A stretch of DNA of 64,000 nucleotides, taken from positions 1,488,001 to 1,552,000 of the forward strand of contig JANHCV010000005.1 of the NCBI GenBank assembly GCA_025594325.1, written 5' to 3'. This DNA is from Blastocladiella emersonii ATCC 22665. Taxonomy: Eukaryota; Fungi; Blastocladiomycota. Below are positions 21,216 through 56,921 of the stretch, piece by piece. Both the position numbers and the translations under genes were made by a program. The notes beneath the pieces were generated by a model, which was not told the DNA's origin, did not search any database, and saw only the letters and a list, made by a program, of their open reading frames with translations. Position 1 is the first letter of the stretch; each line of letters starts with the position of its first letter.

Positions 21216-22372
21216 GAAGGTTTGTGAGGAGAGTGTTGTTGTTCTATTCCCGCATCACCAAAAGTAGATCAGTTTTTCGTCATTGTGAAGCGGGTCGAAC
21301 TAGCGGTGGTCGAAGCAGGCAGAGGTCGAAGTGAGCAACGCGTCGCGTCGCAGGTCGCGCCGCCCGTTTCAGGAGTCACCTGCACCTAGTCGCCGACTCA
21401 CCTCCCTCTCTCGCCAACGCGACCACGAAAACGAATGAACACACCATGAATCGCGGGCTTCACTTACCGCAAATCGTCGACCGAGTGCTCTACTACGCCG
21501 TGCGCGCGCACCCCAACGACTGGGACTTGAACGGGTTTGCGCAGTACGCGCGCGTCATGCGGCGCGCCGACATCCCTAGCGTCATCCGCGCCATATTTTC
21601 AGTGTTGCGCGCGGCTCGAAATGGTCGAAGCGGGCATGGAGGGCAATGTCGCTGCGCTTGAGCTGCGGCGTGAGCTGGGCCTGCCGTTGGACGAAGACCC
21701 GATGGCCGTGCTCGGAGAGTCGAGCATCAAGTTTCGGTGGCAAGTGCTGGACTGGTGGCGCGATTTAGGGCTTCCACTTCCGCGGATCGATGAGAGCACG
21801 TATGACGAGATGCTCCCGGCGCTTGCGGGCGTCTTTGGGTCCCGCGCGATCGCGGAGATGACCGATTCTGCCACGGCGCAGCGTGACAGGTGTGGCGCGT
21901 CGCGTTCACGCGCGGCGTGGCGCGACTTGCCGATCCAGGATTCCCCGCTCCCCGTTCACTGTTGTCCCCATTTCAGCGTGGAGTGCGGTGCAGCCGGCTT
22001 TCGCTCTCCACGGAACAAGATCATTTATCACGCGATTAATTGCGCCTCGTGTTCATCAACCCGCCCCTGGTCCCTCGTCGTTACAGATTCTGAGCCGGTA
22101 CGTGGTGGGCGACGACGTTGAATGCGTTTGCCGTTGTATGGATTTTAACCCTCAAACTACGTGTAGAGACATCCTGCAGCTGCCGCGATGGAGCCGGGCG
22201 ACGAGAATGTGCTTCAACAGTATCCCGACATTATTGAAGGCGAATGCGACAGCCTGCACATCTACGGCGGCTGTCTGACTGCGTTCGGGATCAAGGTTGC
22301 TCATCGGACGAGCCCGAAGGGCGAGTTTGAATGAGACGCTATCCGAGCTGGAGCTCGGGAACCGCGGTGTAA

Positions 22373-22595
22373 GTGTGCCTATATTCTCTTGAGAAGGATA
22401 GCTCTGACGCAATTTCACATGACCAGGGGAGCGCTGGCCCGCGACCCGCGTGAGCGGAAACGGGTCACGAGACCGTGGAAGGAAAAGGAAAACGAAAATC
22501 GCCGAAGGCGCGCGATTGGTGCGCCGCCGGCGGGGGGCCCCCGCCACCCGGCCCATATATAAGGCCGGACGCGGGCTCCTTCTGCTCCCCACTCT
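22373..22595 (+). repeat. DIRS 3' inverted terminal repeat (223 bp), with inward-facing TATATAA at 22556-22562
   Basis: Reverse complement of 27337-27559 with 4 mismatches. Confidence 0.95.
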
Positions 22596-22678
22596 GCTGT
22601 TCAGGTTCCGCACGCTGCAGGCGCCGCTGGACGCGATGCGCCACTCACGTGACGGTGTGCTGGGTGTGGTTGGGCGGG

Positions 22679-22808
22679 TAGGCACACTTACACCGCGGTT
22701 CCCGAGCTCCAGCTCGGATAGCGTCTCATTCAAACTCGCCCTTCGGGCTCGTCCGATGAGCACTACCCAGTCGCTCATCGCTCGGTCACCGCGGTGACCG
22801 TGTGCCTA
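22679..22808. repeat. DIRS internal complementary region (ICR)
   Basis: 22679-22761 is the exact reverse complement of 22299-22381. 22762-22808 is the reverse complement of 27551-27597 with 2 mismatches. Together they spell the circular junction GGGTAGT|GCTCATC. Confidence 0.95.
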
Positions 22809-23830
22809 GTTAGCATGGTTGCGCGTCGCGTCGGCCACCGGCGCAATGAGTTGAACCAGGCGCCGGTAGTGACGCTTGAACGTGCGCGTCGACGCCCACG
22901 TTCCTTGAGCAACTTGCTCGTCGGTGGCGCCCAATTCTGAGAGCCACGACGCCGCCGCTGCCTTGAGCGAGTACGGGACGAAACCCTCGAGTCCCGCCTG
23001 CTTCATGAAGTCGCGGATCCACGACGAGATCGTGTCCGCCACCACTGGCTTGATGGGTCCGCTTGATGAGACGAACATGCGCGCCGGGTCCTTGCGGCGG
23101 GCCGCCGACCTGGCGATGTACGCCTCCCACTGCACGCCGATGTCGAGCTCCGCGACGCGCGTGTCGCGGTCGATCTCGACCATCACCAGCGTTCGCTGCG
23201 CCTCCTTGGGACCGAGGATGGCGAGCTTCACCTTGGATTGCGTGACGCGGCAGTGCGTGAGCAGGATGCGCGCGAGGCAGCTGAACCGCCGCCGAGTGCC
23301 TCGGATGATGAGGAAAGCGAGCCGCGCGCCGAGCATGCGCAGCGGGACGTCCTCGGCCGAGCCAAGCCGCACCGCGTACGCGTCGAGGATGCGGATGTCG
23401 AACACGGGGATCTCGTTCGTCGGGATCGTCGGGCCCTGCATCGCCTCAAGTCCCTCGAGCACGTTGGAGACGACCACGCTCCTGGACGCGTGTGTCATCG
23501 TGCCCCGATCGGGTAAGTCACCCCACGTGTCCGCCATGGCCGTGCGGTCGTTTGCGACCGTGCCGGCCCTGACCCGGACCTCCTCGAACCGGTGGATCAG
23601 AAACCGGCAAAGGGCGTCAACAGATCGATGAAGGGGATCGGATCGTTGCCCACGGCACCACAGAAGCCACTGCCGCCAGGACGAGTCGTACGCGTCCTTG
23701 GTGGACTTGGCCAGCCGTTCGTTCGCCACGCGCGCAGTCTTTGGAGAAAGACCGCGCGCCGCGTAGAATTGCTGGAGAGCCTCCAAGCGACTAATTTGGT
23801 AGTCGAAGTGGACGGCGCCGTTCCCTCCGG
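22806..23830 (-). CDS. DIRS tyrosine recombinase (C-terminal part of ORF 22806-26048)
   Basis: SAM-like N-domain STKDAYDSSWRQWLLWC, then GTRRRFSCL, PYSLKAAAAS and QGTWASTRTFKRHY. It overlaps the RT ORF in another frame. The true start is unknown. Confidence 0.9.
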
Positions 23831-25975
23831 CGTGAAGACCGTGTGCACCGACTCGGGGAGGCGGATGGGCAGGTCGACCAGGAGCGAGAGCAGGAGCGAG
23901 TACCACGGCTGCGTCGGCCAGAACGGCGCGATCACCGTGGCCGTCGCCCCGTCCGAGCGGATCTTGCGGAGGACGCGCGGGAGCAGCCCCCAGGGCGGGT
24001 AGATCCACGCGTCCTCCCTGCCCCAGTTCATCGAGAACGCGTCCGTCCCCGTCGCGTGCGGGTCGGGCGAGTACGAGACAAAGCGATCCGGGATCTGCGT
24101 GTTCAGCGCAGTCGCGAACAGGTCGATCGACACCGGCCACAGCTGGCGTAGCTGCGCGAAGAGGGCCGGGTGCAGCATCCACCCGTACGGGTCGTGCCCC
24201 GCCTTCGAGTCCAGGTCGGCCTGCTCGTTCTCCGCTCGCGGGAGGTGGCGCGCGTGGAGAGTGAGGCCGCGGTCCGCTGCCCACGCCCACGTCGCTCTCA
24301 CCACGGCGTTCATCATCGGGCATTTCCTGCCGCCGCGGCGGTCCAAGTAGAGCGCTGCGGACAGGTTGTCCAAATTTGCGAGGAGGTGTCCATTCCGTAA
24401 CGCCTCGCCCGCGGCCGGGCGATTCGAGAGCGCCACGAGGCCGAGCTGGACTGCCATCAGCTCCAGGACGCCGATGTGTACAAACTCCGTCGCCGGCACT
24501 CCCCGCACCACCGCCGCCGCCAGCTGGTGGCGCGTCGGTGCCTGCTGCAGGAGCGGGATGATCGGGTCGAGCTGCGCTGCTGTCCAGCGGCCGCCGACTC
24601 GGTGAAGGGTCCCGTCGATGATCGCGTTCAGGGACCAGCCCGAGCCCGACGCATCCGAGCACGTCGTGATCTGCTCGGTCCACTGGAGCGGTGCCGGTTC
24701 GGTCGCGCGGCGGAGGAGAGCGAGAGCGTCCTCGAGGTCCTCGCGAACCGTCCCGGTCACGTTGACTATGCGCGCGTCCCACTCGCCGCGGCGTATCGTC
24801 CCCGTCGCCGCCGTGCGGTAGACGCGCCGTAGCTCCATGGTGCGGAGGTTGAGGTCGCCAATCGCCGGCGCCATCGAGACCACCTTGCCGACCACGCTCG
24901 CCACCGTGCGGAGCGGCGCCTGCAATCGTCGGATCAGGGCGGCCAGGGACTCCTCGAGATCCCGGCGCCTCGCCGGGGACGGCGCGAACGCCTTGCGCGC
25001 GAGGTCCCACTCCCAGCCGATCCAGATCAGCGACTGCGCCGGCAGCTCGAGCTTGGCCCACGAGATGCGCATGCCGTGCAGCTGGAGGAGCCGAACGAGA
25101 GCGACGAGGAGCCGCAGGCACAGGTGCCTCGACTCCGCGCCGATGATGATGTCGTCGATCCAGGCCATCGTCGTCGCGCCGACCGAGCGCAGGATCCCGA
25201 GCAGCGGGCGCATCAACTTTGTGAAGACGCGGGGAAGGAGGCACAGGCCGAACAGGTTCGCCAGCGGCTCGTAGACCTTCCCGTTCACCTCCAACCGCAG
25301 CAGGTGGCGGTGGTCCGGGTGAACGCCCAGGTGCAGGAAGAAGTCCTTGATGTCGACCACGCCGGCCCATTCCATCTCCGGGATGACCGACCGCACCGAC
25401 GTGAGCGTCTCCATCTTGAAGCGCTCCGCCGGGATGAACTGGTTGACGTAGCGATAGTTCGTGATCACGCGCGCTTTCCCCGATCGCTGGATCCGAACAA
25501 ACGTCGGGTGCACCGCGGCCTGGTCGCACGGACCCGCCGGCGCCACGGCACCCTTCTCGACCCATGTCTGCACCTCGCGATCGAGGATCTCCCGCTCCTC
25601 CGCCGAGGCCGCTACTGTCCGCGGCCGCAGGCGAGGAGGCGGCTCCGAGATGAGCGGCAGCTTCAGGCCCTGCGGCATGACCGACGCGACAAGCGCCGAG
25701 TCGTGCAGCGAGAGCCACACCGTCCTGAAGTCGGGGTGGTGGAAGCGGCCGCCGACCGGGGTCGTGGCGTGCGGGTGCGGGAGCGTCCTCTCGAGATAGT
25801 CCTCCCGCTCCTGCCCACTCAGGCCCGACGCCGCTGCCAGCGCCGCTGCGCACGCGTTGGGGTCCGAAATTCCGAGAAGTCGTTTGAGAAGTGGAAGCGT
25901 CAGCGGTCCGCTCCTCACGGCCGCCAACAGCTGTGCTACTTGAGAAAAGGCCTCGTCCCAGCGTGCGAGTAGCAC
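23597..25975 (-). CDS. DIRS pol: reverse transcriptase - RNase H - Dam-like adenine methyltransferase
   Basis: RT: FKMETL, VDIKDFFLH, LFGLCLLPRVFTK, WIDD. RNase H: SDASGSGW, ELMAV, LDNLSA, HLPRAENEQAD. MT: IDLFATALN..DAFSMNW..IYPPW..VIAPFWPTQPW. Confidence 0.93.
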   Translation of the reverse strand: MLLARWDEAFSQVAQLLAAVRSGPLTLPLLKRLLGISDPNACAAALAAASGLSGQEREDYLERTLPHPHATTPVGGRFHHPDFRTVWLSLHDSALVASVMPQGLKLPLISEPPPRLRPRTVAASAEEREILDREVQTWVEKGAVAPAGPCDQAAVHPTFVRIQRSGKARVITNYRYVNQFIPAERFKMETLTSVRSVIPEMEWAGVVDIKDFFLHLGVHPDHRHLLRLEVNGKVYEPLANLFGLCLLPRVFTKLMRPLLGILRSVGATTMAWIDDIIIGAESRHLCLRLLVALVRLLQLHGMRISWAKLELPAQSLIWIGWEWDLARKAFAPSPARRRDLEESLAALIRRLQAPLRTVASVVGKVVSMAPAIGDLNLRTMELRRVYRTAATGTIRRGEWDARIVNVTGTVREDLEDALALLRRATEPAPLQWTEQITTCSDASGSGWSLNAIIDGTLHRVGGRWTAAQLDPIIPLLQQAPTRHQLAAAVVRGVPATEFVHIGVLELMAVQLGLVALSNRPAAGEALRNGHLLANLDNLSAALYLDRRGGRKCPMMNAVVRATWAWAADRGLTLHARHLPRAENEQADLDSKAGHDPYGWMLHPALFAQLRQLWPVSIDLFATALNTQIPDRFVSYSPDPHATGTDAFSMNWGREDAWIYPPWGLLPRVLRKIRSDGATATVIAPFWPTQPWYSLLLSLLVDLPIRLPESVHTVFTPEGTAPSTSTTKLVAWRLSSNSTRRAVFLQRLRAWRTNGWPSPPRTRTTRPGGSGFCGAVGNDPIPFIDLLTPFAGF

Positions 25976-26097
25976 CTGGACGGAGGACAAGGGGAGAGTG
26001 GAGTAGGAATCGCGTCAACACCAGGGACCGATTTATACCCACCAACAATACAGGGGATCAACGGACCGTACGCCCCGCTGGAACAGCGGCCCACGAG

Positions 26098-27192
26098 TCA
26101 ATTGCGCGGCTCGGACGACTTGGCCGAAGCCTCGCCGCCGTTGCCCTTTCCCCGGCTGGAAGCGGACTGCCCGGCGTGGCCCGTGTAGCCCCCGCGCCCG
26201 CTTCCTGACCACCCGCGAGCCCCGCCGCGACCACCGCGCGAGGCCCGCGAGTTCTTGTAGGGGGCGCCCTTGTTGGCGCCGCCCTTTGCGCCGCCGCCCG
26301 AGCCGCTGGCCGGCGCGAACAACGCCATCTGGTTGCCGAGCTGGACGTAGCCGGCCGCCGCCGCCGCGTGGCCAAGCTGGTCGTTGAGCTCCTTGGTATA
26401 GACGCCCATGTTGAACAGCGTGAGCGTGTCGTCCTCGGTGCGGCGCGTCGGGACGGTGCACGCGATCTCGAGCGCGACCTCGCCCTGGACGCCGTTCTCG
26501 CGGACGTACGCGGCATGGCGCTGGACCGTTGCGTGGCGGACGTCGTTGGCCGTCAGCGCGAAGGCCATGCCGACGTACTTGGCGACGTCCTCGAGCAGCT
26601 CAAGGGCCTCGTGGTCCTTGCCGAGCGCGTCCTTGAGCACCTTGGCGAGCTTGTCGACCGAGACCATGGCCGAGAGGGTGGCGCGGAGGTTGAGGCCAGA
26701 GCGGACCGTGTTCTCGTAGTGGATGGCCTCGGCGACCTTGTTGGCCGACTCCTTGAGCGGGCGGATGCCGGCGTTGCGCGTGGGCGGCTTGGCCGTCGCA
26801 GGCAGGTCCAGGAACTTGTACATGGCGTTGGACATGATGGCACAGTCCTTGGGCAGGAGACCAGCGTCGGGCACCTCGCGGCCGCGGAGCACGTTGCGCG
26901 CGTGCCGGGGAAGACCGTCGACGATGGCGCCCTCGACGTGGAAGCCGGGGTCCAAGTCGCCGTGGTCCGAGTCGCTGTCGTCGCTGGCCGGGGCGGCCTG
27001 CGCGGTAGCGCTGCCGAGGAGGGTGGCCGCCATGGCGCGGTCATCATTGGCGCCCGCGTAGTCAGCGTTGTCATTGCCTGCGTTGCCGCCCGAGGGGACC
27101 ATGTTGTAGGCTTGGAAGTCGTCATAAGTGTCGACGTCGTCAAGCCCACCGTTGTGCCCATCTGTAACGGAGCGCGCACGTGACACTGTCAT
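26098..27192 (-). CDS. DIRS gag-like ORF
   Basis: 364-aa GC3-rich ORF between the 5' ITR and pol, with a helical core and a Gly/Arg-rich C-terminal tail. Confidence 0.75.
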   Translation of the reverse strand: MTVSRARSVTDGHNGGLDDVDTYDDFQAYNMVPSGGNAGNDNADYAGANDDRAMAATLLGSATAQAAPASDDSDSDHGDLDPGFHVEGAIVDGLPRHARNVLRGREVPDAGLLPKDCAIMSNAMYKFLDLPATAKPPTRNAGIRPLKESANKVAEAIHYENTVRSGLNLRATLSAMVSVDKLAKVLKDALGKDHEALELLEDVAKYVGMAFALTANDVRHATVQRHAAYVRENGVQGEVALEIACTVPTRRTEDDTLTLFNMGVYTKELNDQLGHAAAAAGYVQLGNQMALFAPASGSGGGAKGGANKGAPYKNSRASRGGRGGARGWSGSGRGGYTGHAGQSASSRGKGNGGEASAKSSEPRN

Positions 27193-27336
27193 CCCGCGCG
27201 CCGCTGTTGCGCCCGCCGCTGGTGCGCTGGCGCTTGTGTGGACGCACGTCGGGGCCGGTGGAAGCCGACAGGTCGTTCTGCGTGTAGGTAGGAGAGTTCA
27301 TGTTGTTGAGCGCGAGCTATGCGAGCGCGAGAGAGA

Positions 27337-27559
27337 AGAGTGGGGAGCAGAAGGAGCCCGCGTCTGGCCTTATATATGGGCCGGGTGGCAGGGGCCCCCC
27401 GCTGGCGGCGCACCAATCGCGCGCCTTTGGCGATTTTCGTTTTCCTTTTCCTTCCACGGTCTCGTGACCCGTTTCCGCTCACGCGGGTCGCGGGCCAGCG
27501 CTCCCCTGGTCATGTGAAATTGCGTCAGAGCTATCCTTCTCAAGAGAATATAGGCACAC
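27337..27559 (-). repeat. DIRS 5' inverted terminal repeat with promoter (TATATAA at 27370-27376)
   Basis: Inverted copy of 22373-22595. The TATA box and ATTGG/CCAAT box face the gag ORF. Confidence 0.93.
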
Positions 27560-28850
27560 AGTCACCGCGGTGACTGAGCGATGAGCGACTGGGTAGTCTC
27601 AATTACGCGCTCTCGACCCCCGACCAGGATGTCAAGACCTTGACCTTTGCCCCGTGCAACATGAATGCTGATTCCGCTTGATCTCTCCTTCTCCCTCCGA
27701 CCGTCGCAACGCTCAAGTTCAATGGCATGCGCCACGACGTTCCGCGCAGCGCGCCAAATGCCGCACCTGGACTGCTGTTCCCTGACTCTGTCATGGCGCT
27801 TCACTTCACACTTTTGCGCGTCAAGGGTAGCGGTGGTGCAGCTTTTGGGAGCCTCTTCCCCGCCAAGCTCGACGCTTTGACCTTCTACGTGTACGAGTTC
27901 GACGCGCTCAAGGACGCTACAACCTTGTTCTCGTGCCTTCCAGCGTCTCTTCAAACGCTTTTCTTCCAGCGCTGCGAGTTTTCGCGCAAAAACCTCGGTA
28001 CTGATCCATACTATGACCGTGGCCTCAGCTCGTTGCCCAATCCAGAGTCAGGCTCCCACCCAAGCCCAACTTCCAAGTCGCCATCCGCTTCCCTCGTCGT
28101 TTTAAAGCCGTCGCGCGCTACACCCGCTGTTGGCGCGTTGCTGCGCTTGATTCCGACGGGGCTCAAACGACTCTCCATGCGAGAGTGAGCGCTGACCGCA
28201 GCGGACGTTATAGCGCTTGCCAAATGCTTTCCAACCAGTCTCACGCTTCTCGATCTCTCCTCCAATTATCCACGTTGCGGCGCAGTGCAGCACCTCGCCC
28301 CACTGCTTCCCGCGAGCCTGGAAACGCTCAACCTCAGGGGATTTGCAATGAATGCCCTTGATCTCGCGAGCCTTGCAGAAAACCTTCCGGGCCGGCTCCG
28401 CAGTCTCAAGCTGGGCAGCTACAAGTGTGCCGATTTGGATCCGAACCCAAGGGAGCAGGCACGTCGCCAGCTGGTTCTCGCCATCGCAAAGCTGCCTCTT
28501 GTCGAAACTCTCTGGGTTCGCGGATTGAGTCTCACTGACGCAGACCTGACTATTCTTCTCGACGGGCTGCTGCTGCAAGGGAACGTGAAAGAACTCGACC
28601 TGTCAGGCAGCTCGCTCACAGTTGCCTCTGTCGCCACGCTTGTGCGATTTGCCGAAGGTCTCTCCCACGTTCTTCAGTTTATCATGGGAGAGTCCGGAAT
28701 CCCCAGAAATTTGCAGCAGCCGCTGTACAAAAGCCCGCGTATCAGGCTCGTCATGTACATGTTGCCAGAGTTGCCTCCGCCCGAGTGGTCCGAGACTCCG
28801 CCTGGCCCGGAACTGTGAATATCGTTGTGATTGTATAATTTGTGCCTTCT

Positions 28851-28892
28851 GTTTCGCCCGTGGAGTTTCGCCCGTGGAGTTTCGCCTGTGGA
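28851..28892 (+). repeat. 3 x 14-bp tandem repeat GTTTCGCCCGTGGA
   Basis: Units at 28851, 28865 and 28879. The third has one CG->TG change. Confidence 0.9.
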
Positions 28893-28900
28893 GTCTCAAC

Positions 28901-28940
28901 GAGCTGTGAGACGCGTCGCGATATCACGTTCGGCACGTGG
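28901..28940 (+). promoter_or_regulatory. Conserved upstream module of Ank-LRR genes (ACGCGT ... CACGTG)
   Basis: 30 bp match 37141-37170 with 3 mismatches. Partial copies lie upstream of P1, P4 and P6, all about 110-140 bp before the ATG. Confidence 0.6.
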
Positions 28941-29051
28941 GGCGCCTGGGCCAGCGTTTCAGGTTGTCCCTTGTTCCTCAAGCTCCTGCTCAAGCTCCTT
29001 GGTCGCGGCCCCAACGCTCCACGCTCAATGCACCTCAAGCAATGAAAACCG

Positions 29052-30702
29052 ATGGATCCCATACTTAACTTGCCGCACATTATTGAGAGAGTGCTTTGCT
29101 ATGCCGTAGCGGCGCACAGCGACCCAAACGACCTGCACAGGCTCGCCGAGTACGCGCGCGTCATGCGGTGCGCTGACATCCCAGGCGTGATCCACGCCAT
29201 CTTGCAAATCTGCCCTTTGCTCTCTATGGACGAGGCAAGCGCGTGCGGTAACGTCGCAGCTCTCAAGCTCTGGCGCCACTCAGGGTTGCCTCTCAATTCA
29301 CCTTTCCGACTGGCCCCCCAGGCCGAGGCTTGTGCCTGGGCGGTGTCATCATGTGAGCGGCGCTGGGGGGAAAACCCGCACCGCATCGCAGGGCGGATCG
29401 GCTCACGTGGTGGCGTTTCAGCCACACAGTGGGGGCGGTCAGAAAGGTCTATTACACTGTCGAGGCGCTTCTTGGAGCGGGCCGACATTTGCACTACCAA
29501 ACGCTCGACTGGTGGCGCGATTCGGGGCTTGCTCTTCCGCCGTTTTGGACCACGCGGGACCACAAACGTGATATTGCGTTTGAAGTCGTTTCGGGCGTAG
29601 TTGGCACTTGGGCGGCTGCCGAAATGGAGAACCATAAGCCTGTTTGTACGCTTCGTTGCCCCCAACTCGGAAAAAAAATAAAGATAACTGACTGCCGCTG
29701 ATGTGCTAGCTCGCGTCCACAGACATGGAACCGGGTGACGCTCGGCTACTCTGGGAATTTTTGCAGGTTGCCAGCGGCGCCTCAAAATACCTCGAGCTTG
29801 ACCATGGTCGCTTGACAGCTACCGGCATCGCGATTTTGAATTACGCGCTCGCTAATCCTGGCTCTCAAGTCGAATCCTTGAACTTTGGCCCATGCAACAT
29901 GACTTCCAAAACGGCCCGGTTAATTGTCATCCCGCCAACAGTAAAGTGGATTTGCATTAGAAGCATGCGCCATGATCTCGCCAATGGTGCTCAACCGCTT
30001 CCTCTGGGCTTGCCGTGGCCCAATTCAGTTGAGACGCTTTTGATCTACAACTCCTGGGTTGGTCCTGGATGCGATGTCGCGTTTGGCAGCCTCTTCCCAA
30101 GGAAACTCGAAGCTTTGTACTTCGACAAATACGATTTTGGGCGTCTCGATGGTTCGACGCAGCTCTTCACGTATTTTCCTGCGACTCTTGACGACCTCCG
30201 TTTCACTCGGTGCTTGTTTGCGAGCAGGCCAAACCGCTCGCCGCCGCTTCAAGTGACTCCAGTCTTCAAGTCGCTTTTGAACTCGCTGCCGCCTGACCTT
30301 CAAACCTTGCATCTCGAGAGATGCGGTTTATCTGCTGCAGACCTTTGAGCGCTTGCCCCACGCCTTGGTGAATCGCTCAAGCACCTTGGACTATTTGGGA
30401 ATCAACTTCCCAGTGGCTTCATGCCCAACCTTGTTCCGCATCTCCCTGTAAATTTGGAGGTCCTTGACCTCATGCACTTTGCGCCTGACGACATCAATCT
30501 TGCAACCCTTGCGCGTTGGCTTCCGCAAAACCTCACTCAACTAAGCTTGTACAATCCCATAGCCAACGAGGCGCTTCAGAGGGAGAACAATCCGGTTCGC
30601 CGTGAATTTGTCTTTTTGGTTGCTCAGCTTCCCGTGAATACGCGTATTCTTAGTAACAAGCCCTGGGACGTTGGTTTGGCTAGCCTGGACTCCCCCAGTT
30701 AG
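29052..30702 (+). pseudogene. Ank-LRR family paralogue P2 (MITE insertion, nonsense codon, 3' truncated)
   Basis: MDPILNLPHIIERVLCYAV start and MEPGD..LNYAL LRR exon. TGA at 30346. Homology to other paralogues stops near 30640. Confidence 0.85.
29299..29449. mobile_element. 151-bp MITE inserted in the P2 ankyrin exon
   Basis: Imperfect terminal inverted repeats CACCTTTCCGACTGGCCCCC / reverse complement GACCTTTCTGACCGCCCCC. Flanks are AATT and TATT. Removal rejoins LPL(N/Y)YTVEALLGAG as in P5. Confidence 0.65.
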
Positions 30703-30741
30703 TCCCCCTGGTTGCGGGGCCGCCCTCCTGCCCCCTCGCCC

Positions 30742-32355
30742 ATGAACCCCACTACCATGAAGCAAAGGAAAAAGACTTATTGCAATCGCACCGGCGACAG
30801 CCCGGCTGCTGTTGAATCCAAAAGCAGCGCCAACCCCAAGGTCGGCCCTGCTATCAAGCCAGTGGCTCACTTGACAACCTCGCCGTCCCTAACGTGTGCA
30901 ACGCTTGCACTCAGCAACACTACTGCCGACCCTTACTACCCTTATGGTCGGTCGTATGCGCGCGACCTCTTTTTTCATCATTGGCCTTTGGGGAAGCGCC
31001 TTGATGCGCTTGTTTTCCAGTGCGGTGATCTGCGTGATGTTGCACACACCTATTGCGAAACTGATTCAGTGTGTCAAGGCCCTGTGCGGCCCTGATGCCT
31101 CTGCCCTTGTTGGGCTTTGCGGTTCGCTTACATTTCGCGTCTTTCACAAACAACAACCACTAATTCAACTCCTCGCGCGTGTAGCCGGACCTCACACGAC
31201 TGGAGCGCTGCTGCCCAAGCTCCTCGCGTTTACCTTTGCTGCGGGCCGCTTGACTTGGACTGGCTGGCGGTGAACAGCTTACTTCAGCCCCTTGGCCCAA
31301 TGCGCGCGAGCTCTGGACTTCCATTCGCGGCAACAGCAGCTTGTCGCGGTGCGCGGCCGAAATCTTTGCTCAAGCGCAGCTCTACAGATTCCCAAACGAC
31401 GTTCCCAAACTGGCTCACAACACATATCTGTATTGCGTCAAGGGTACTTTGCAGCGCGCAGTTGTGGCTGCAGCGGGTGCCGCGAACCCGTTTGTGGCCA
31501 TGGTCCTCGAAATTTTTTTGGGATTGGCTGTGCACGAGTTCCGCAGTTTTGATGTGGAGCCCATTGACAACCTGCTGCTTCGAGTTGTCACGTTTGTCCC
31601 GCGGTACATTGTCAAAGGCTTATTGAATTGACTTGTTGCTTGCGTTCGCTTTGACCACAGCCTTTCACTTGACTCTTCATTGTTGGAGCGGCGCACCTTG
31701 CAGCTGTCTGTGTCGGTGACCAGGGTCTCGGTTGGCTCAGTCACAGACGCCACAGCTGGCCTTACTGCCTTCGCCACTGGCATGCGCTTCCACGCCATCA
31801 CCGATTTCGAACGGAACCTTGACCCGCAACCGCTTTTGCCAGTTGCGAGCGCCATCGAGTTGGACAGCAAACTTTTGATTACCCTTGCGCTTCCCAACAC
31901 TTATCTCCGTGCGCGCGTTGTTCAAATTGAACAGAACGCACCGGCGGGTGTGCCGGTCAAACATGCCTCCAGCCTTGTCGAGTTTATGGTGAACAGCAAG
32001 GAGCAGGCTTTGCGACTCCCGTATCGCGCGACAGTCAAATCATTTGAATGCAAGCGGCAGCAGCGCATCGTCAAAATCGTCGTTTTGCGTGACATTTCGC
32101 CTGTCCTTGCGCGCAGCGTGTCGTTGGACTCTCCTGCCTTGATCTTTGGCCCGCTTGCCCTGGCAATTCACAACTACGCAAACATCTATCCCCGCCATGC
32201 GATCTGTCGCCTTGAACAGCACGCGGCGTTGCTTGCGCTCGCACGCGACGTGGGAGGCATCATTGATACTTTCCGGGACCTCAAGCAGTCTATTCTCAGC
32301 TGTAGCTTTAGCGAAGCTGAGTTTCTGTGGGAGCAATTGAAACCTATCAGGCACA
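30742..32355 (+). pseudogene. Degenerate DUF4470-like gene, 5' part
   Basis: YYPYGRSYARDL...ALVFQCGDLRDVAHT (31021-31041) and later LLARV resemble the DUF4470 pattern (YPxGN..A..L...GCGDxRNxLxT...LARN). Several frameshifts and stops. Confidence 0.4.
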
Positions 32356-32863
32356 TCAACCTTGCTCTTGTGGTCACATGAGTGGCTCAGTGACCGTTTT
32401 CGATTTTCGTCGCGCGACGAGTTCCGTTGTTTTTCGCTTTCACTTCATTCCGACCCCTGCAACGTAAATCTGGACTGTGCTTTGCCAAGTCCCCAACAGT
32501 TCGAGGCTGTTCACTTCGAGGGGAGCGAGGTCCTGTGCAGCGGTTCCCGTGCGCAGGCGCGACGAGACGGACCTCGCTCGAAACTGACTGTTCAGCATCA
32601 CGTGACCTGGCATCAATCCGGTCTGGCTGCATTTTCGTGCCCTCGGAAGCTCTCCCACTCCACGCCCGCTCGCTCGCGCTTGCCGCTGCTCGTCGACGCT
32701 CTTTGAGACCTCCTGTGCTGACCAGCTCTTTACCCGCCACTCCTACCCCATGCAGCGCTTAATACTTCGCGATCCGGCGTCTGCCTGGCCGCCATGCGGC
32801 CACATATAAAGGCGCGCGGGCCGCCGCTGACAGTCCTTGCTCTCCTCCACCACTCGCAACACC

Positions 32864-34393: not shown

Positions 34394-34441
34394 TCCTGAT
34401 CCTGTTCCTTCCTTCGTTTCTTTCGAAAATACTTCCGCTGT

Positions 34442-36276: not shown

Positions 36277-36344
36277 TAAACTACTTCACTTTCACCAACT
36301 GAAACAGTCTCAAGAAGCCAAGTAAAGCTACAGCTGAGACCCAA

Positions 36345-41965: not shown

Positions 41966-42306
41966 TCGGACGTGTTGGCGAGCGGGGCTCCCAACATGGC
42001 TGTTCGCGTGCGGATAGCAGTCTTTGTGTTCTTTCCCATGATCCATGAATACATCTTGCTGCCATTACGCATGGTATCCTTTTCTTGATTATCGCGGTAC
42101 AATGTTTTCCCACGAGTAGTGCCAACACTCTGGTCACGCCGCGACACATGTCGCGACTCGTCGCTAGTAGACGCTGATGCGTCGACCTGGTCGTGCGTCA
42201 CGCATACCCCCAGGTTCGCTCGCTCCTTGACCCACCCTCTCGAGTGCGGGGAGCCCGCGCGCGAACCGTCTTGTCCTTGATTGCTCACCACGTCCATTCG
42301 CGTCAG

Positions 42307-42976: not shown

Positions 42977-43260
42977 AAATCTTTACCTGCCAAGGTTCGC
43001 GAAGATTTGTAGAAAACATTCGAAAAGTAAGGCTGATAACGTCTCAAAAGATTTGAGGTCCCCAAATCTTCTCCCATTTTCGGGCCGCATCTTTTCTGAC
43101 CTTGGCGGGTTCTGGGTGTGTGAGCGCTTTAAAGACGCGTCGCTCATAGCGAGTGGAGCACACGTGACTGCGCCCGTATACTGTTCTTGTGCGTTTTCGC
43201 ACTTCGACCCGATTTCGCGCCTACGCTACTCCCGAAACACGCGAAAGTAATGGCAGCAAC

Positions 43261-48653: not shown

Positions 48654-51600
48654 TTACACCTCCTCGCTCTCATCCATCTCGGCCGTCTTGATCACCGTCG
48701 GCTTGCCCTGGGCGAGCGGGTCGTACGGCATGGGCGCGTAGACGCCGTGGAACCCGAACGGGACGACCCGCCCGGTGTTCATCGACGCGCGGCCGATCTC
48801 CTTGAACGTGCGGGCGTCGAGGACCAGAAGGAACGTCTGGCGCGCGTTCCCGTCGAGCACGACGCTGAGCACGACCGCGTCATCTTCGGCGCCCGTCCCA
48901 CCGGCCTCGCGCGGCCGCGGCACGACGACGGGCTCGCTCGGGTAGCACCCGGGGACGCGCCACTCGACGGCGGCGCGCGTGCGCACGTTGATCTTGACGA
49001 GGGCCTCGAACGGCATGCGGGCGGACGCCACGACGCAGAAGGCGAACTGGTAGTCGGCGCGCCGGAAGTAGTCCGGGTGGATCACGGGGAGCTCGGGGCC
49101 GGGCCCGCTGCGGATGTCGTAGGTCGCGCGCGGGTACCCGGACCCGCCGGGCCCGGGCGTCGCGGACGCGGCCACCGCAGGGTCGCCGCTCGGCCACATC
49201 CACCCGGCCATGGCCTGCCACCACCGGTACGTCGACGCGCCGAGCGCGGACCGGCTCGCCACGGTGCGCACGCCGCGCAGCGTGTACCGGCGAAGGTGGC
49301 TCGCCTCGAAGTCGGTCGTGCCCGACCGGAACTTGTCGAGGTACATCTCCTGGATGTTGCTCGGCGACCGGTACGCGCACAGGTCGATGACGATGTCAAT
49401 GTCCTCGTCGACGGGCTCGGCGCCGCCGTCAGCTGCCGCCGCATCCGCTGCATCCGCGGTCGCCGACGTGCGCTTGTACACGACGTCGTACGCGTTGATG
49501 GTGTGAAAGACAAAGAACGGGTCGGCCTGGTACGTGGCGACGTGGCGCTTGGACGCGCGGTCGATGACGTACATGTAGACGGGGACGTGCTCGTGCCACT
49601 CGAGGGCGCTGGCGACCGTGTGGGTGAAGACGATCGGGATCCCGCCCATGGACCAGTAGTACGGGCAGCAGATGAGAATGATGTACCGCTGCGTGACGGC
49701 GAAGCTGTGCATGTACGACGCGCGGCGCGTGCGCAGCGTGCACACGACCTCGCCGCCCTTCGGGTGCGCCGCGTTCACCGTGAAGACGTGCGTGCTGATC
49801 ACCGGTCCCGGGTCCTGCAGGAAGTTGATGTACTCGCCCGTCGTCGTGTCGTAGTGCTCGTGCGCCGACGTCATGATCCCGACGAACTTGGGGTTCATCT
49901 TCGTGTACGCCGTGTACCCGCGCGGCTGTAGCGTCTCGGCGTCCAGCTCCTGCAGGATGTTGGCGTCCGTCTTGGCCAGCAGGATCTGCCGCCACTCGCC
50001 GTTGCCCGTGTCGTCCGTGCCCGGGCGCGGGTACCGCACGGGGAACCCGGGCGTCACCGACACGTTGACGTTGAACTCGGTCGGGATCGCCAGCGAGATG
50101 GTGAAGAACTTTTTGAACATGCTCTTGCACGGGTCCTGCGACTGGGCTACACACACACGTTCGCGCGCGCGAAAGTGTCAGCTCGAGTCCATCACCGCGA
50201 TCTCACCCGAAGAAAACGTACCAAACGACAGCGGCAGCGCGCCCGTAGTCTTCATGACCGACTCCTGGGTCTCGGACGTGAACCGGTTACGGTAAAAGAC
50301 CTGGCCACCGCGCACCTCGAACCGGTGCAGGAGGCTGAACCCGTCGAACCAGTGGTCGATAGCGACGACGCGACCGTCGCCCTCGCTCGACGGCAGCTCG
50401 GTCTCGACCTCGAACTTGCCCGGCCCGCACCGGTAGAAGACGCCCGACACCCAGTCGGGGATGTTGCCCTCGACCTGCAGCGCGAGCGGGGTGAGCACCT
50501 CGGCGCACTCGCTGAACCCGAGCAGGCAGCCCTCGGGGAACTCGGCCGCGGACTCGAACGACGCGATGCTGCCGAGCTCGGACGACTCGGAGCACGACCC
50601 GTTCTTGAGCAGCGCGGCCCCGCCCGACGACGACGTCCCCGAAACCCCCGGCTCGGGCGACTTGCTCGACCGCCGCCCGACGCCGCCGCCGCTGACCGAA
50701 ATCGACTTGCGCGGGCTCTGGAAGATGCTCATGCGGTGCGACGACCTGCGGCGCGCGGACTCGGCGGGCGACGCGGGGACCGACGGCGGCACCACGGCGT
50801 CGTTGGTGCTGAGCCCCTCGAGCGTGATGGCCCCGTTGCGCACCGTGACGGACGCGCGGCGGCTCGGCACCACGCCCGCGGTACTGCGCGCGAGCGGGCC
50901 CGCCATCCCGACCGTCGGGATCCCCGGGTGCGCGAACGACGACCGCCGCCGCTGCGGCGCGCTCGGCGGCGGCGTCGGGGTGACCGACTGCGGCGACGTC
51001 CCCGCCGCGCTGCCGGACCCGCGCCGCGACGATGCCGATGAGGAACCGAGCGCGGCGGCCGCGAGCAGGCGCGACAGGAGGCCGGGCGACGGCGCGCCCG
51101 TGGCGGCGTCGGTCTCAGCAGCGGACGGCGGCGGGCGCGGCGTGTTGGCCTGGGTCGACGGCGACCGCGACCGCACGGGCGTCGTGGTGGTTGTCGCGGC
51201 CGTGGGCATCGGTGGCGGCATCTCGACCGGCTCGCCGTCCTCCTCGGCGACGCGGTCGAGCGAGCCCGACAGCTGGTCCGACGCCTGCGCGGACCCCGCG
51301 GCCGCGGGCGTCGCGGCCCCGCTGACGTCCTTGATGAGCGACTGGCGGCGGAGCGCGGTCAGGAGCGAGAAGACGGACGACCGCTTGTGCTCTGCCGACG
51401 GCTTGCGGGCACCGCCCACGCCCGCGCCGGCGGACGGCGGTGGGACACTGAGCGACTCGCCGCTCGGCTGCGCGAGCGAGACGCCCGACTTGTCGGTGGC
51501 GGCGGGGGTCGAGGCGGCGGTGGGCGACTCGAGCTTCCAGGTGCCCTTGACGGCGCGCACGGGCGACGGGTCCGTCAGCGTGTCGCCGAGCATGGCGGCC

Positions 51601-51962
51601 GTGTCGCGCGCGAGCTCGGCCGCGGACCGGTCGGCGCCGTCCGTGTTGGCGACGCGGATCACATTCTTGGTCGTGTCGTTGCTGGTGGTAGTGCGGGCGA
51701 AGGCGAGCTGCTTGAGCGCGGCGTGCCCGTTGGCGGAGCCCGCGTTGCCCGAGTCCTGGAGCTGCGGGGTCGGGCTGTCGTCGAGGACCGCGGCGGCGCC
51801 GTCGAGCTCGAAGATGTGGTCCGCGTCCTCGGTCTCCTCGGGGATCGGGATCGACGCCGGGTCGACGGGCGCCGAGACCGAGTGGAAGATGGCCGGATCG
51901 ATGCCGAGCGAGTACGACTCGCGGCGGAACGGGTTCCGCGTCCCGGGCGTGAAGCTGGTCAT
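48654..51962 (-). CDS. Carotenoid cleavage oxygenase (RPE65/BCO family) with long low-complexity N-terminal extension, 2 exons
   Basis: VEGNIPDWVSGVFYRCGPG, HWFDG, TDAN, iron ligands SAH / YMHSF / FHTINAY / PFGFHG, ELPVI and YPSEP. One intron at about 50153-50222. Confidence 0.93.
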
Positions 51963-54512: not shown

Positions 54513-54726
54513 CGTATTGCATCAAGTTTACATGGCTGACATCGAGCGACAGGCGAAGGAGCAGAGCAGCGACGAAGGGCCGCGGCGGCCGCGGCGACGG
54601 CGGGCAGCGTAGGTGAGTGGCGCAGCGCCATCGCGTGACCTCACTTGATGCGTTGCGGGGCGAGCGGGGTGCACGAGACGCTGGCGGGACGCCCGCGGCG
54701 GCAAGCTGGCGCAGCGAGAACGTGGA

Positions 54727-55695
54727 ATGGAACGCGAAAAGAAGCCGCGAAAGAGTGTGTTTCAGAGCTCGCAAACGATCGCGTGTTCAGTTCCCAGTGA
54801 AAACGACTGTAAGAGGGGCATAGTCGACGACCGTAAGCCGCGCGATCCGGCCGCCGCCGGTGCTGCCCCTGTCGCGCCGCTGCCGCTGGACTTCGTCTCC
54901 GCAAGCGGGTCGCGTGCATCGGTGAACCGGTGCTTCAACGGCGCGGATTTCAAGATGGCCATCACGTCATTCGCCGCCCTCCTCGGCGCGCCGACGCAGG
55001 AGGATGTTAGCAAGCTCGAGTCGCTTTTCCTCAACGAGTCGGTCTTCTCGAATCACGGCAGCAGCCGCGCGGGCCACGGCGGGGCCGTCCAAGTCGTCCG
55101 CATGGACGTGGTCCCTCGCGCGGGCTCGGAGGACACTAAGCGCACTGGCGCTGGGCTCCGGCTCCTTGTCGAAAGCTTCGCGTTTGCTGAGTGCGGCGGC
55201 AGTATCAACCGCTTGCGTGCCACTGATCCGCTGCCACCATCCCCGTCTCCGGCGCCACGGCGCCAGATCCTGATCGTGCACTTCAAGGTCTGTGAGGGCA
55301 ACTTGGCAGCGTAAGAGACGCTCCTCGCGTACGACGCGGTCGTCCACCAGGCTCTCGAGACGTGGGACCTCGCGCGCGAGCACGCGGCTCCCGTGGCGGT
55401 CGAGGCGGCCCGTAACAAGGCGCTCCAGTTTGCGTTTGCCAAGGTTCAGCGCGCGCACGGCAAGCTGAACCAGGGCTTCACGCGCCAGGGCAAGCCCATC
55501 ATAGCCGACCACGGCCAAGATCTACCTGTGGCGGCCTGCGCCGGGCACCATGGAGAAGATCATGAAGATGCAGCAGGAAGCCATGGCGCTCACCACGTAG
55601 CACGCTGCGGCGCGGATCGCTGCTGCGACTGCCTATGCCAAGGTCACCCGGATCCGCGAGTCCATCAAAGCGGGCGCAAAGCGCGGCCGCCATGA
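54727..55695 (+). pseudogene. Unknown degenerate gene between P7 and P8
   Basis: The frame continues through TAA (55312), a frameshift near 55500 and a TAG near 55595, with GC3-rich helical codons. It abuts the truncated end of P8. Confidence 0.45.
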
Positions 55696-56921
55696 TCGTG
55701 CAGTTTATGAGATCGAGCGTGACAAGGGTGAGCGGAAGAGATCTAAACCAAGTCAGATCCTATACGGTCTCAAAGGCAATGTTTCCAATCTTGAGCTCGA
55801 CGAGAGAGCGCGGGAATGAACTGGCAGGAGGGCTCGTGAACGGAACTCGAGTCTCAACGCTCACGCGCAAAATTTGAAGCGACTTTGACAGCGAGGACAT
55901 CACTTCGTAGAGCGCGTTGGTTTGGCAGTCCACCTTGAGCGACAGCTCTACCAGGAAGCGCGGGATAAGCCGTGCAAATGCGGCCGCACCCGCTTCCACA
56001 AGTGCGCCCATGTCCACGACCAGCGACCCCAGCGTGGAGGGTAGGCGTGAGAAGAGACTTGACACGACTGCACCTGAAAGCTTGCCGCATTCGAGTGCGA
56101 GCAGCGAAAGCAAGCGTGGCCAGGAAACCGCACCGCTGACCGTGCGAACCGACCCGAGCCAAGGTCTGCAGAGCGTCACCGTCGTGACCGACTCTGGCAG
56201 CTTGAGGGCGATCAAACGAGGAAGATCAAGTGTGCAGTGGGAGAACCTGACCGACTCGAGCTGCTGCGCAGAACTCGCCATGGCTTCGTTGAGTGCATCA
56301 ATGTCAGCAGATGAAATTGACTCGTAGGCCAAGTTGAGATTTGACTTGCTCCCATCAGCGATTCCGGGACAGACCGAGCAGTTGCTCGCGTCAAAAGGAG
56401 GCAGGTCGTCAAAGTACTCTTACAATACCAACCGGGCGGAGTGAGATTGACGCGGAAACAACTGGTCCAAGAGGAAATGACAACCGTACCCGGCCAACCT
56501 TCCGTACACGGTTCCTCGCAGCCACCCCAAGTGCAACGCCAGCTCCCGGGTGGGGCCCAATTGCCAGGAAAGCGAGCTTGCTCCCCGGCACACTCCCAAA
56601 GTCGCGCCACCACTCGAGCGTCGTGAGCTCCTCGCGCGCTATTGCGGCTTTGAGGGACCCGAGAGTGCATGTCAGCGGGCGACCAAGTTCGGCCCACTTC
56701 TCAAGGACCGAGACTCGGCCGTGTGACGTCGCCGAGTCGAGAGAAAGCGTTGGCGAACGAAGCAATATGGTCCGCTGGACGCGCGGGATGAGGTGCCGGC
56801 GCATCACACGCGAGTACTGCAGCAGCCCGGCGATGTTGTTCGGGTCGTTGTGGAGCCGCACGGCTTCGACGAGAATCGCCGCGACGAGCTCGGGCATGTG
56901 GAGGAATAACTGCAAGGTCAT
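55690..56921 (-). pseudogene. Ank-LRR family paralogue P8 (nonsense codon at 55760, 3' truncated)
   Basis: MTLQLFLHMPELVAAILVEAV, SLDSATSHG and LEWWRDFG. The LRR exon is collinear with P7 and continues past TAG (DLTWFRSLPLTLVTLDLINC) before breaking at about 55690. Confidence 0.8.

Follow-up and report, generated by a model that had tools for sequence, protein, structure and literature searches.

An apparently lineage-specific family of three-helix head, ankyrin and LRR proteins in a tandem array of Blastocladiella emersonii

Our analysis of a 64,000-nucleotide stretch of the Blastocladiella emersonii ATCC 22665 genome (the window) confirms a real, undescribed and apparently lineage-specific family of repeat proteins, present there as an array of eight tandem paralogues spanning ~35 kb. 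The copies have a common layout, in which a three-helix N-terminus of ~55 amino acids is followed by 2-3 ankyrin repeats, a linker and a solenoid of leucine-rich repeats (LRRs). We consider it somewhat probable that the proteins serve as two-part adaptors, with a constant docking head and a variable LRR end that binds ligand.

A tblastn search of the window with the N-terminal ORF of P5 returned exactly eight copies (E 1e-143 to 1e-22), starting on the forward strand at 21446 (P1), 29052 (P2), 37264 (P3), 39275 (P4), 40789 (P5) and 43261 (P6), and on the reverse strand at 54512 (P7) and 56921 (P8). The LRR tails are mutually homologous and the motifs RVMRR, MDEAS and LDWWRDSGL were located in the paralogues, so that the single layout and the motifs reported in a preliminary description of this DNA both stand. 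The same is true of the intron-bearing variable linker, as one phase-0 intron of 55-73 nt (GTNCGT ... CTGAC/CTAAC ... YAG) follows the N-terminal half in P3-P7, with the reading frame kept once it is removed. Motif counts and protein lengths also bear out the division into short solenoids (P4-P6; 5 motif repeats, proteins of 367-368 aa) and long ones (P1, P3 with 554 aa and P7 with 569 aa; 7-11 or more motif repeats). Additional family members are found on at least four other B. emersonii contigs.

Four copies are intact. P3 (37264..38986, forward strand) encodes 554 aa in two exons (37264-37698 and 37754-38986, intron 37699-37753), the first holding the three-helix head and the ankyrin repeats and the second the linker and 7 LRRs of 26 residues that match the motif. 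An identical splice is found in the NCBI model H9P43_005166, which is truncated to 238 aa. P5 (40789..41965, forward strand; exon 1 40789-41211, intron 41212-41284, exon 2 41285-41965) and P6 (43261..44436, forward strand; exon 1 43261-43686, intron 43687-43755, exon 2 43756-44436) are short forms of 367 and 368 aa, and neither they nor P4 have an NCBI gene model. P7 (52731..54512, reverse strand; exon 1 54512-54066, intron 54065-53994, exon 2 53993-52731) is a long form of 569 aa belonging to a second subfamily; its exon 2 has 11 motif-matching LRRs, and gaps in the repeat spacing suggest a total of about 13.

P1 is a pseudogene. Its 5' part (21446..22298, forward strand) consists of the N-terminal module, frameshifted near 21598, ankyrin units to ~21899 and the beginning of the linker exon (~22188-22298), which runs up to a DIRS1-like retroelement of 5.3 kb (22298..27597, reverse strand) lodged inside the linker/LRR exon. 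The element has 246-nt inverted terminal repeats (22353-22598 and 27334-27579, 96%), internal complementary segments and a reverse-strand reverse transcriptase ORF at 23597-25990 (Pfam RVT_1, E 6e-9), in agreement with the earlier claim that a DIRS element had broken one copy. The reverse-strand ORF 22806-26048 (1080 aa), which overlaps the reverse transcriptase ORF, had no Pfam match and was rejected as coding; it is probably a high-GC artefact. The 3' part of P1 (27598..28818, forward strand) encodes a long LRR solenoid that is interrupted in frame by stops at 27679 and 28186 and has its terminal stop at 28816. P2 (29052..30702, forward strand) is likewise a pseudogene, with an intron at ~29642-29709, an LRR exon from ~29710 that has the conserved MEPGD motif at 29725, a nonsense codon at 30346 and a terminal stop at 30700. 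Its N-module is split by a 155-bp insertion (29298-29452) with 23-nt imperfect terminal inverted repeats; these repeats suit the MITE that had been proposed, but neither the window nor loci L001-L003 yielded a second copy. P4 (39275..40462, forward strand; exon 1 39275-39697, intron 39698-39766, exon 2 from 39767) is a short-form pseudogene whose sole defect is a TAA nonsense codon at 40124-40126. P8 (55760..56921, reverse strand) is short, with an N-module from 56921, non-consensus candidate introns and a stop at 55760 inside the LRR, beyond which LRR-like sequence goes on for ~35 aa; it has no counterpart of the C-terminal half of P7. P8 is therefore ambiguous, either a broken copy or a ~360-aa protein, and the proposed split into four intact and four broken copies holds for P3, P5, P6 and P7 on one side and for P1, P2 and P4 on the other, but not securely for P8.

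Tandem copies, dead copies and a transposon-rich array together make a birth-and-death pattern, as had been suggested. The family probably grows through tandem duplication, at times with gene conversion, and loses copies through transposon insertion and point mutation. One tract of ~100 bp in P5 (41827-41927) has 99% identity to P4 and is attributed to gene conversion. The array sits in a transposon-rich island of lower GC, where the coding GC of the copies is 0.56-0.64 (P2-P8 0.56-0.62) against 0.63-0.74 in most flanking 2-kb windows.

From these features it could be argued that the family is largely decaying and without current function, its members having been carried along when segments of a repeat-rich island were duplicated and now drifting toward pseudogenes: 3-4 of the 8 copies are broken, P4-P6 are absent from public annotation and the coding GC is lower than that of most of the surroundings. 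We regard this as improbable since four copies, with a dS of 0.6-1.3 between them, nevertheless retain open frames of 367-569 codons and an intron in the correct phase, the head and the scaffold positions have a dN/dS of 0.2-0.35, LRR scaffold residues are almost invariant, and an ACGCGT...CACGTG pair has been retained upstream of four copies.

The tail is an LRR solenoid, as previously described. Pfam LRR_6 matched P3 (2.5e-7) and P7 (2.9e-12), LRR_4 matched as well, and each protein has 5-11 LPxxLxxLxL motif repeats, mostly 26 residues apart; weak matches to Pfam FNIP repeats (E 0.013-0.06) were treated as LRR cross-matches. A sequence search with the LRRs returned RI (8.7e-10), NLRP LRRs and, weakly, LegL1 ('Gala protein', 5.4e-5). 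In an AF2 model of the 238-aa P3 protein H9P43_005166 (pLDDT 82.8), residues 144-238, comprising the first three repeats only, align with NLRP2, NLRP14, NLRP3 and a designed LRR (Z 8.6-9.2, rmsd 2.2-2.5 Å).

Overall pairwise dN/dS between paralogues is 0.2-0.5, which indicates constraint. dN amounts to 0.15-0.36 in the head, 0.33-0.82 in the linker and 0.15-0.57 in the LRRs, the head having changed less than the linker and, for the majority of pairs, less than the tail as well. Predicted concave-face x positions were 16% identical versus 50% for other non-scaffold positions (p 9e-8 by a Fisher test in which pair counts are not independent), and this variability is no proof of ligand diversity since in every LRR protein the x positions are those under least constraint. 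The second subfamily repeats the pattern (13% versus 35%), and between older paralogues the concave-face omega is ~0.7-2.3 on 24-25 codons. No excess of concave-face change was seen in two pairs of recent origin, P4-P5 and the pair formed by P0003 and the gene next to it. The earlier description of the family as fast-evolving consequently holds only in part, and the case for diversifying pressure is weak: the predicted concave face is hypervariable in old pairs, but not in recent ones, and the overall ratios are low.

Such variability, in a tandem birth-and-death array within a transposon-rich, lower-GC island and in LRRs nearest those of NLRP and RI, is what one might expect of a NOD-less innate-immunity repertoire, that is, intracellular sensors of viruses, parasites or bacteria engaged in an arms race. 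The proteins, however, would have no signalling or oligomerisation domain. Pfam scans gave no NACHT or NB-ARC match in the ORFs of five copies or in the full-length paralogue P0003, in keeping with the preliminary description, and no TIR, HET or death fold in window copies and family members; at only 367-569 aa, the proteins are wholly accounted for by head, ankyrin repeats, linker and LRRs. Moreover, the paralogues are old (dS 0.6 to above 1.3), whole-domain dN/dS stays at 0.2-0.5, and the newest duplicates have no concave-face excess. An immune role of this kind appears very improbable to us.

Two lines of evidence support that the degenerate units between head and linker are ankyrin repeats, as had been proposed. 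First, a profile of the window family matches 2060 cluster representatives, with E values as low as 1e-67 for proteins with ankyrin arrays. Of the 150 matches listed, nearly all fall on profile positions 58-110, which match 4-12 stretches in tandem, and the proteins tested carry Pfam Ank_4 (E down to 2e-26). Pfam ankyrin families gave no direct match in the window copies scanned; Ank_4 was found in 7 of 18 aligned family members. Secondly, the 238-aa model has helix pairs at 58-75, 84-105 and 118-136, and its residues 52-140 superpose on the ankyrin domains of 3ANK, Notch, glutaminase and p18INK4c (Z 5.9-6.4), with some alignments covering residues 1-147. Foldseek returned nothing from the PDB at E<=0.001 for this model or for the head model.

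The N-module also stands at the head of ankyrin-only proteins in Allomyces javanicus and Blastocladiella britannica, and in more divergent forms in B. emersonii. These belong with the uncharacterised true homologues of the window family, proteins with an LPxEI head and WW-type ankyrin repeats in zoosporic fungi (Cladochytrium replicatum, Nowakowskiella sp., Rhizophlyctis rosea, Zopfochytrium polystomum, A. javanicus, B. britannica and B. emersonii), all annotated as hypothetical and matched by the window profile, via the ankyrin repeats, at E 1e-30 to 1e-67. Like the window family they have a three-helix head of ~50 aa immediately before the first ankyrin repeat, in identical register. They differ in having 4-12 ankyrin repeats instead of 2-3 and then an LRR solenoid, and in the window head the E of LPxEI is gone and the P is often missing too. 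Nothing was learned from word-indexed searches for homologues, that with the P3 tail yielding only three B. emersonii proteins and saying nothing of taxonomic range, that with the P0015 head region only itself, and a half-length alignment only its own members.

The proposed F-box at the N-terminus was not borne out. A diverged Skp1-binding F-box would make the family substrate receptors of SCF ubiquitin ligases, FBXL-like with an ankyrin spacer, and F-box families do pair a constant head with a variable tail of repeats. By eye, the L-x-L-P-x-I-I-E-x-I-L at the extreme N-terminus and two further helices resemble H1-H3 of the F-box. Among chytrid relatives with an LPxEI head and ankyrin arrays, F-box or F-box-like was the top Pfam match in 4 of 10, the best (E 5.8e-5) reaching 23.2 bits against a cut-off of 24.3, with the matches spanning only the first half of the Pfam model. 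hhalign aligns the heads of the window family and of the chytrid proteins in register (E 4.9e-4, probability 32%). A PDB profile search with the chytrid heads gave two matches, the second of which was to the F-box of FBXO42, again in register and at a non-significant E of 0.16.

On the other hand, no Pfam F-box (PF00646 / PF12937) was matched at E<=1 in the ORFs of P3, P5, P6 and P8, or at E<=10 among 18 family members, six of them window copies. PDB profile searches with the N-module and with a merged profile of 18 relatives' heads returned no F-box protein; the sole match to the N-module profile, an ABC-transporter Walker-B (E 0.0012), was discarded as motif mimicry (LLSMDEAS resembling ILVLDEATS). 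Modelled alone (pLDDT 91.3), the head is a plain three-helix bundle that resembles only generic bundles (best Z 5.3). Neither the 50 VIA-align matches listed nor the 16 Foldseek matches include an F-box protein, though in so small a domain a missing match is no proof that the fold is another one. No alignment of F-box-LRR structures to the 238-aa model takes in the head. The LP dipeptide is replaced by LL in P4 and even in the intact P5, by AP in P7, by MP in P8 and by TA, VG or LH in other paralogues, only L14, A17 and V36 being invariant or near-invariant, and the LRR sequences are nearest to RI/NLRP, not to Skp2/FBXL. In our judgment a diverged F-box is unlikely. A wider proposal, to which we give very little credence, would join this head and the ankyrin-only zoosporic relatives into a very large class of degenerate-F-box substrate receptors; in Blastocladiella a swap of the ankyrin tail for LRRs would then have created a NOD-less repertoire handing variable ligands, possibly non-self ones such as those of giant viruses, to the ubiquitin system.

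An effector repertoire had also been suggested. Expanded, repeat-rich, lineage-specific families are typical of effectors, and Legionella AnkB and LegL1 (the latter the weak sequence match noted above) and Ralstonia GALA are similar in architecture. Yet a crude hydropathy scan revealed no signal peptide or membrane span (maximum 19-residue Kyte-Doolittle mean 1.08-1.74), the helical N-termini are hydrophilic, and B. emersonii is a free-living saprotroph. Secretion or injection in the service of a parasitic lifestyle is thus extremely unlikely.

We favor the two-part adaptor, in which the array would encode soluble intracellular binding proteins specific to Blastocladiomycota. Exon 1 would be the constant half, a three-helix cap stacked on 2-3 WW-type ankyrin repeats, common to the paralogues, to ankyrin-only Blastocladiella and Allomyces relatives and, in more divergent form, to chytrids; this half, we infer, has a structural or docking role and touches a common partner. 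Exon 2 would be the variable half, a linker and an RI/NLR-like solenoid of 26-residue repeats differing in repeat number and most of all at those x positions that the concave beta-strand face exposes to solvent, and it may give each paralogue its own ligand. Less easily reconciled with an adaptor are the missing NCBI gene calls at P4-P6 and the shortened P3 model, the 3-4 dead copies among eight, and the concave face of recent pairs, which shows no excess change.

Zoosporic fungi are poorly annotated, as illustrated by intact P5 and P6 without a gene model and by P3 truncated in the public annotation. An apparently lineage-specific architecture of three-helix head, ankyrin repeats and LRRs is now defined, and is tied to a large family of chytrid and Blastocladiomycota proteins with LPxEI head and ankyrin repeats, whose annotation goes no further than hypothetical or a generic ankyrin-repeat label, although among the 2060 cluster representatives matched the head was seen in only a subset of those inspected. 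If the head is a docking box, for Skp1 or another partner, the family would be a big adaptor repertoire comparable to the F-box expansions of plants and nematodes; otherwise the family is an ordinary one of repeat proteins. The pattern on the concave face offers a concrete set of residues for testing.

Among known systems, FBXL receptors (Skp2, Grr1, FBXL3, TIR1/COI1) are alike in being soluble, with a small helical head, an LRR solenoid of ~26-residue repeats and a constant head with variable tail, and the LRRs of COI1 can be superposed on residues 147-238 of the 238-aa model (Z 6.8). The window family differs in the ankyrin repeats between head and LRRs, in a head without an F-box match in the tests run, and in LRRs closer by sequence to RI/NLRP. 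The LRRs of RI/NLR type (RI, NLRP2/3/5/9/14, NOD2, CARMIL, tropomodulin) match the tail best, both by sequence and by fold, but the window family has no NACHT or other NOD module, a period of 26 instead of 28/29 residues, and an ankyrin head. Legionella AnkB, pandoravirus and mimivirus F-box/ankyrin proteins and poxvirus ANK-PRANC proteins likewise combine a small helical box with a short ankyrin stack. Giant-virus ankyrin proteins were the top BFVD fold matches of the 238-aa model, all BFVD matches having E above 0.001, and one metagenomic giant-virus ankyrin protein lies in a cluster matched by the window profile at 7e-58. These bacterial and viral box and ankyrin proteins carry recognisable F-box/PRANC domains and, unlike the window family, have no LRR tail. 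Finally, Ralstonia GALA, Legionella LegL1 and the F-box/BTB-LRR expansions reported for Parachlamydiaceae (PMC4209131) are also expanded families joining a docking box to RI-like LRRs; they are bacterial, secreted and equipped with a bona fide F-box or BTB, whereas the window family is fungal and intracellular, with ankyrin repeats and a putative box.

The best-supported view of the eight paralogues (P1 to P8) is that they belong to a lineage-specific family of soluble binding proteins built in two parts. The first part would be the conserved half, a head of ~55 residues with the ankyrin (ANK) units behind it, which is common to ankyrin-only relatives; the other would be the LRR half, in which repeat number and concave face differ between paralogues. 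Such an adaptor layout would provide the head with a presumed partner and the tail with presumed ligands. A tblastn search with one N-terminal ORF recovered a ~130-aa module in exactly eight places in the window, as the preliminary description had counted, with six on the forward strand (starting at 21446, 29052, 37264, 39275, 40789 and 43261 for P1 to P6) and two on the reverse strand (54512 for P7, 56921 for P8). The tails of the copies are homologous to each other as well.

DNA alignment revealed a short intron directly 3' of the N-terminal half, with a GTNCGT donor, a CTGAC or CTAAC branch site and a YAG acceptor. Once 55-73 nt are excised, a single open frame is regained in P3, P4, P5, P6 and P7; the intron is in phase 0, and for P3 the junction agrees with that of the NCBI model. 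An intron at the ANK/LRR boundary is common, but not universal, since two paralogues on another contig (L003:12331-14019, 562 codons, and L003:10001-11400, 466 codons) are continuous ORFs without it. On that contig NCBI's 313-aa model H9P43_007577 does not coincide with the continuous ORF. In the GCA_025594325.1 annotation P4, P5 and P6 are without gene models and P3 is cut to 238 aa (H9P43_005166 of B. emersonii ATCC 22665, 100% identical to our P3 tail query), leaving two intact genes, P5 and P6, without any public gene model. The match to H9P43_005166, on contig JANHCV010000005.1, bears out the zoosporic fungus of the preliminary description. The GC content of the window is high (0.55-0.74 in 2-kb windows); it is 0.55-0.62 at 28001-44000, the part holding P2 to P6, against 0.63-0.74 in most flanking 2-kb windows, and coding sequence in the eight copies has a GC of 0.56-0.64. 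Ahead of four forward-strand copies, P2, P3, P4 and P6, ACGCGT is followed ~20 nt on by CACGTG, between -141 and -88 relative to the start codon (e.g. 37151-37181, 39154-39185 and 43135-43166); P1 and P5 have the pair in part, P7 and P8 not at all. Either a promoter element common to the copies or sequence inherited with the duplication could account for it.

Those N-terminal halves that were scanned with Pfam gave no match at E<=1. However, when a profile built from six window N-modules (head plus ANK units) was searched exhaustively with HMMER against 1.84 billion cluster representatives, 2060 matches were returned at E<=1e-3; nearly all of the best 150 align to profile positions 58-110, each protein doing so over 4-12 tandem stretches. 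Because the relatives with such stretches, where tested, carry Pfam Ank_4 (E down to 2e-26), the 'SMDEAS..G.V..LE.W' and 'VLDWWRDSGL' units are genuine divergent 'WW'-type ankyrin repeats. The fold agrees. The 238 N-terminal residues annotated for P3, modelled with AlphaFold2 (18-row family alignment, mean pLDDT 82.8), have N-terminal helices at 6-19, 27-36 and 39-52, helix pairs at 58-75, 84-105 and 118-136, and then beta-strand/helix repeats. Compared with 48,161 PDB chains by VIA-align, model residues 52-140 superpose on the ANK domains of 3ANK, Notch, glutaminase and p18INK4c with Z about 6, and the ankyrin-like units of the preliminary description are thereby upheld. Several ANK alignments cover model residues 1-147, which suggests that the predicted head helices prolong the ANK stack and act as its cap.

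The head had been labelled F-box-like, and direct tests did not support this label. F-box families were absent at E<=10 from 18 family members (Pfam), and a profile of the whole N-module found no F-box protein among 177,635 PDB sequences. The 56-residue head modelled alone (pLDDT 91.3) matched generic three-helix bundles only (best Z 5.3); the 50 VIA-align matches listed and the 16 from Foldseek included no F-box protein. The hallmark LP is LL in intact P5 and AP in intact P7. That the head is nevertheless an F-box, and the family one of SCF receptors, is a live rival that we regard as unlikely; what speaks for it is a sub-threshold hint from relatives. Many ankyrin-array relatives begin 'LPxEI(I/V)(D/E)xIL..L', and in 4 of 10 such heads the top Pfam match is F-box-like or F-box, all below curated cut-offs (at best E 5.8e-5, 23.2 vs 24.3 bits) and covering helix H1 only. 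A profile of the 'LPxEI' heads has just two PDB matches, the second being the F-box of FBXO42 in register (E 0.16), and hhalign places the window heads in register with the 'LPxEI' heads (E 4.9e-4, probability only 32%); a broader profile of heads found no match. Intermediate-looking heads occur in B. emersonii proteins such as H9P43_004864 and H9P43_006598 ('LPREIIEPILV...'). In our reading the head may descend from an F-box-like helix, its membership being putative; it can be read equally well as an N-terminal ANK-stack cap peculiar to the family.

The preliminary description also held the family to be fast-evolving and under diversifying pressure, and here the results are mixed. Pairwise Nei-Gojobori dS among P3 to P6 ranges from 0.6 to above 1.3 and is saturated against P7. 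For the head, ANK and LRR parts dN/dS lies at 0.19-0.53, with larger values for the linker. These are therefore old paralogues evolving under constraint, and the family as a whole is not fast-evolving. Variability is concentrated on the predicted LRR concave face, defined as the x offsets of LxxLxLxx, in accordance with the strands of the model. Among P3, P5 and P6, residues agree in 12/75 comparisons at concave-face offsets vs 119/236 at other non-scaffold offsets (Fisher p 9e-8), and a second subfamily (P7, H9P43_008497 and neighbours) displays the same contrast, with 13% vs 35% identity (p 0.03 and 0.001 for single pairs), pair counts in the Fisher tests being non-independent. Leaving aside P4-P5, the four remaining pairs have an omega of about 0.7-2.3 on the 24-25 concave-face codons, as opposed to 0.23-0.31 elsewhere. 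These results should be read with the caveat that x positions are the least constrained sites in any LRR. The pattern fits paralogues with different putative binding surfaces, and falls short of demonstrating an ongoing arms race. The concave-face excess is seen in older pairs, but not in the most recent ones (P4-P5, and H9P43_008497 with its tandem neighbour).

The division into four intact and four broken copies proved essentially right. The intact ones are P3 (554 aa), P5 (367 aa), P6 (368 aa) and P7 (569 aa). In P1 the frame is shifted near 21598 and interrupted by stops at 27679 and 28186, and a 5.3-kb insertion occupies 22298-27597. This insertion contains inverted terminal repeats of 246 nt (22353-22598 / 27334-27579, 96% identity), internal complementary segments (22298-22381 / 22679-22762 and 22762-22808 / 27551-27597) and a reverse-transcriptase ORF on the reverse strand (23597-25990, RVT_1 6e-9); an overlapping 1080-aa ORF (22806-26048) had no match in a Pfam scan. 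Judged by its sequence, the insertion has DIRS1-type anatomy and is a DIRS1-like retroelement. P2 carries a stop at 30346 and a 155-bp insertion (29298-29452) inside the first ANK unit; the 23-nt imperfect terminal inverted repeats of this insertion agree with its earlier designation as a MITE, but a second copy was found neither in the window nor in the three other loci compared (L001-L003), and the label is unproven. P4 is broken by a single TAA at 40124, where P5 has TAC. P8 is short and of ambiguous status: a stop at 55760 falls within an LRR, with ~35 more LRR-like residues beyond it, and there is no consensus donor, while several non-consensus splices would yield a ~360-aa candidate product. 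A tract of ~100 bp is 99% identical between P5 (41827-41927) and P4 (about 40320-40420), against 44-87% in the other segments compared across the gene, which indicates short-tract gene conversion at the 3' end of the two genes. That the family is decaying, with P1, P2 and P4 broken and four copies intact, is less likely than the SCF-receptor reading. Between P2 and P3, at 34649-36276, lie a PIF1-like helicase fragment (PF05970 1.7e-19, ORF 34649-35782) and, at 35818-36276, a fragment of a helicase C-terminus; together they may be a Helitron-type remnant. An RPE65-type carotenoid cleavage oxygenase (48654-51962, reverse strand, PF03055 2e-71) adjoins the array, and could be a retinal source for the rhodopsin-guanylyl cyclase of phototactic B. 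emersonii.

The profile matches examined came from B. emersonii, B. britannica and Allomyces javanicus, from the chytrids Zopfochytrium, Cladochytrium, Nowakowskiella and Rhizophlyctis, and from a giant-virus metagenome. Among the 150 best, the full ~55-aa head of the window copies was confined to Blastocladiomycota and one metagenome contig. It stands before ankyrin arrays in A. javanicus and B. britannica, and before ankyrin arrays or the ANK2-LRR architecture of the window family in B. emersonii. Further ANK2-LRR members of B. emersonii lie on at least four other contigs, those beyond the window including H9P43_006082, H9P43_008497 with its tandem neighbour and H9P43_007577 with its neighbour, as well as H9P43_005223 on the window's own contig; H9P43_006433 consists of head and ANK units in just 139 aa. 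One of the best-matching ankyrin-array relatives (P0006 / P0153, E 7e-58) shares its cluster with a viral (giant-virus) metagenome protein whose annotation reads 'Ankyrin repeat protein', a hint that WW-type ANK genes may have passed between giant viruses and zoosporic fungi. The B. emersonii genome paper (PMC9730499) does not describe the family and mentions neither ankyrin, LRR nor F-box; a survey of how protein families have expanded in early-diverging fungi (PMC8778642) does not describe it either, and gives ankyrin expansions for anaerobic chytrids only.

A hydrophobic segment or signal-like N-terminus was looked for in the family proteins and not found; that these are secreted effectors is less probable than that they are SCF receptors. 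The same holds for a NOD-less immune repertoire, a reading to be set beside both the variable concave face and its lack of excess in recent pairs; Pfam scans of five window copies and a paralogue contained no NACHT/NB-ARC match, as previously claimed. The LRR solenoid itself was confirmed by Pfam, by fold and by sequence. LRR families (LRR_6, LRR_4, LRR_1) were the only Pfam matches, in the long tails of P3 and P7; the repeat 'LPxxLxxLxLxxCxL...' has a period of 26 residues, and a motif scan counted 5 copies in P5, 5 in P6, 7 in P3 and 11 in P7. Model residues 144-238 superpose by VIA-align on NLRP2, NLRP14, NLRP3 and designed RI-like LRRs (Z 8.6-9.2, rmsd 2.2-2.5 A). By sequence the LRRs nearest to the window tails are not those of Skp2/FBXL, but those of ribonuclease inhibitor (8.7e-10), NLRP5/3/1 and Legionella LegL1.
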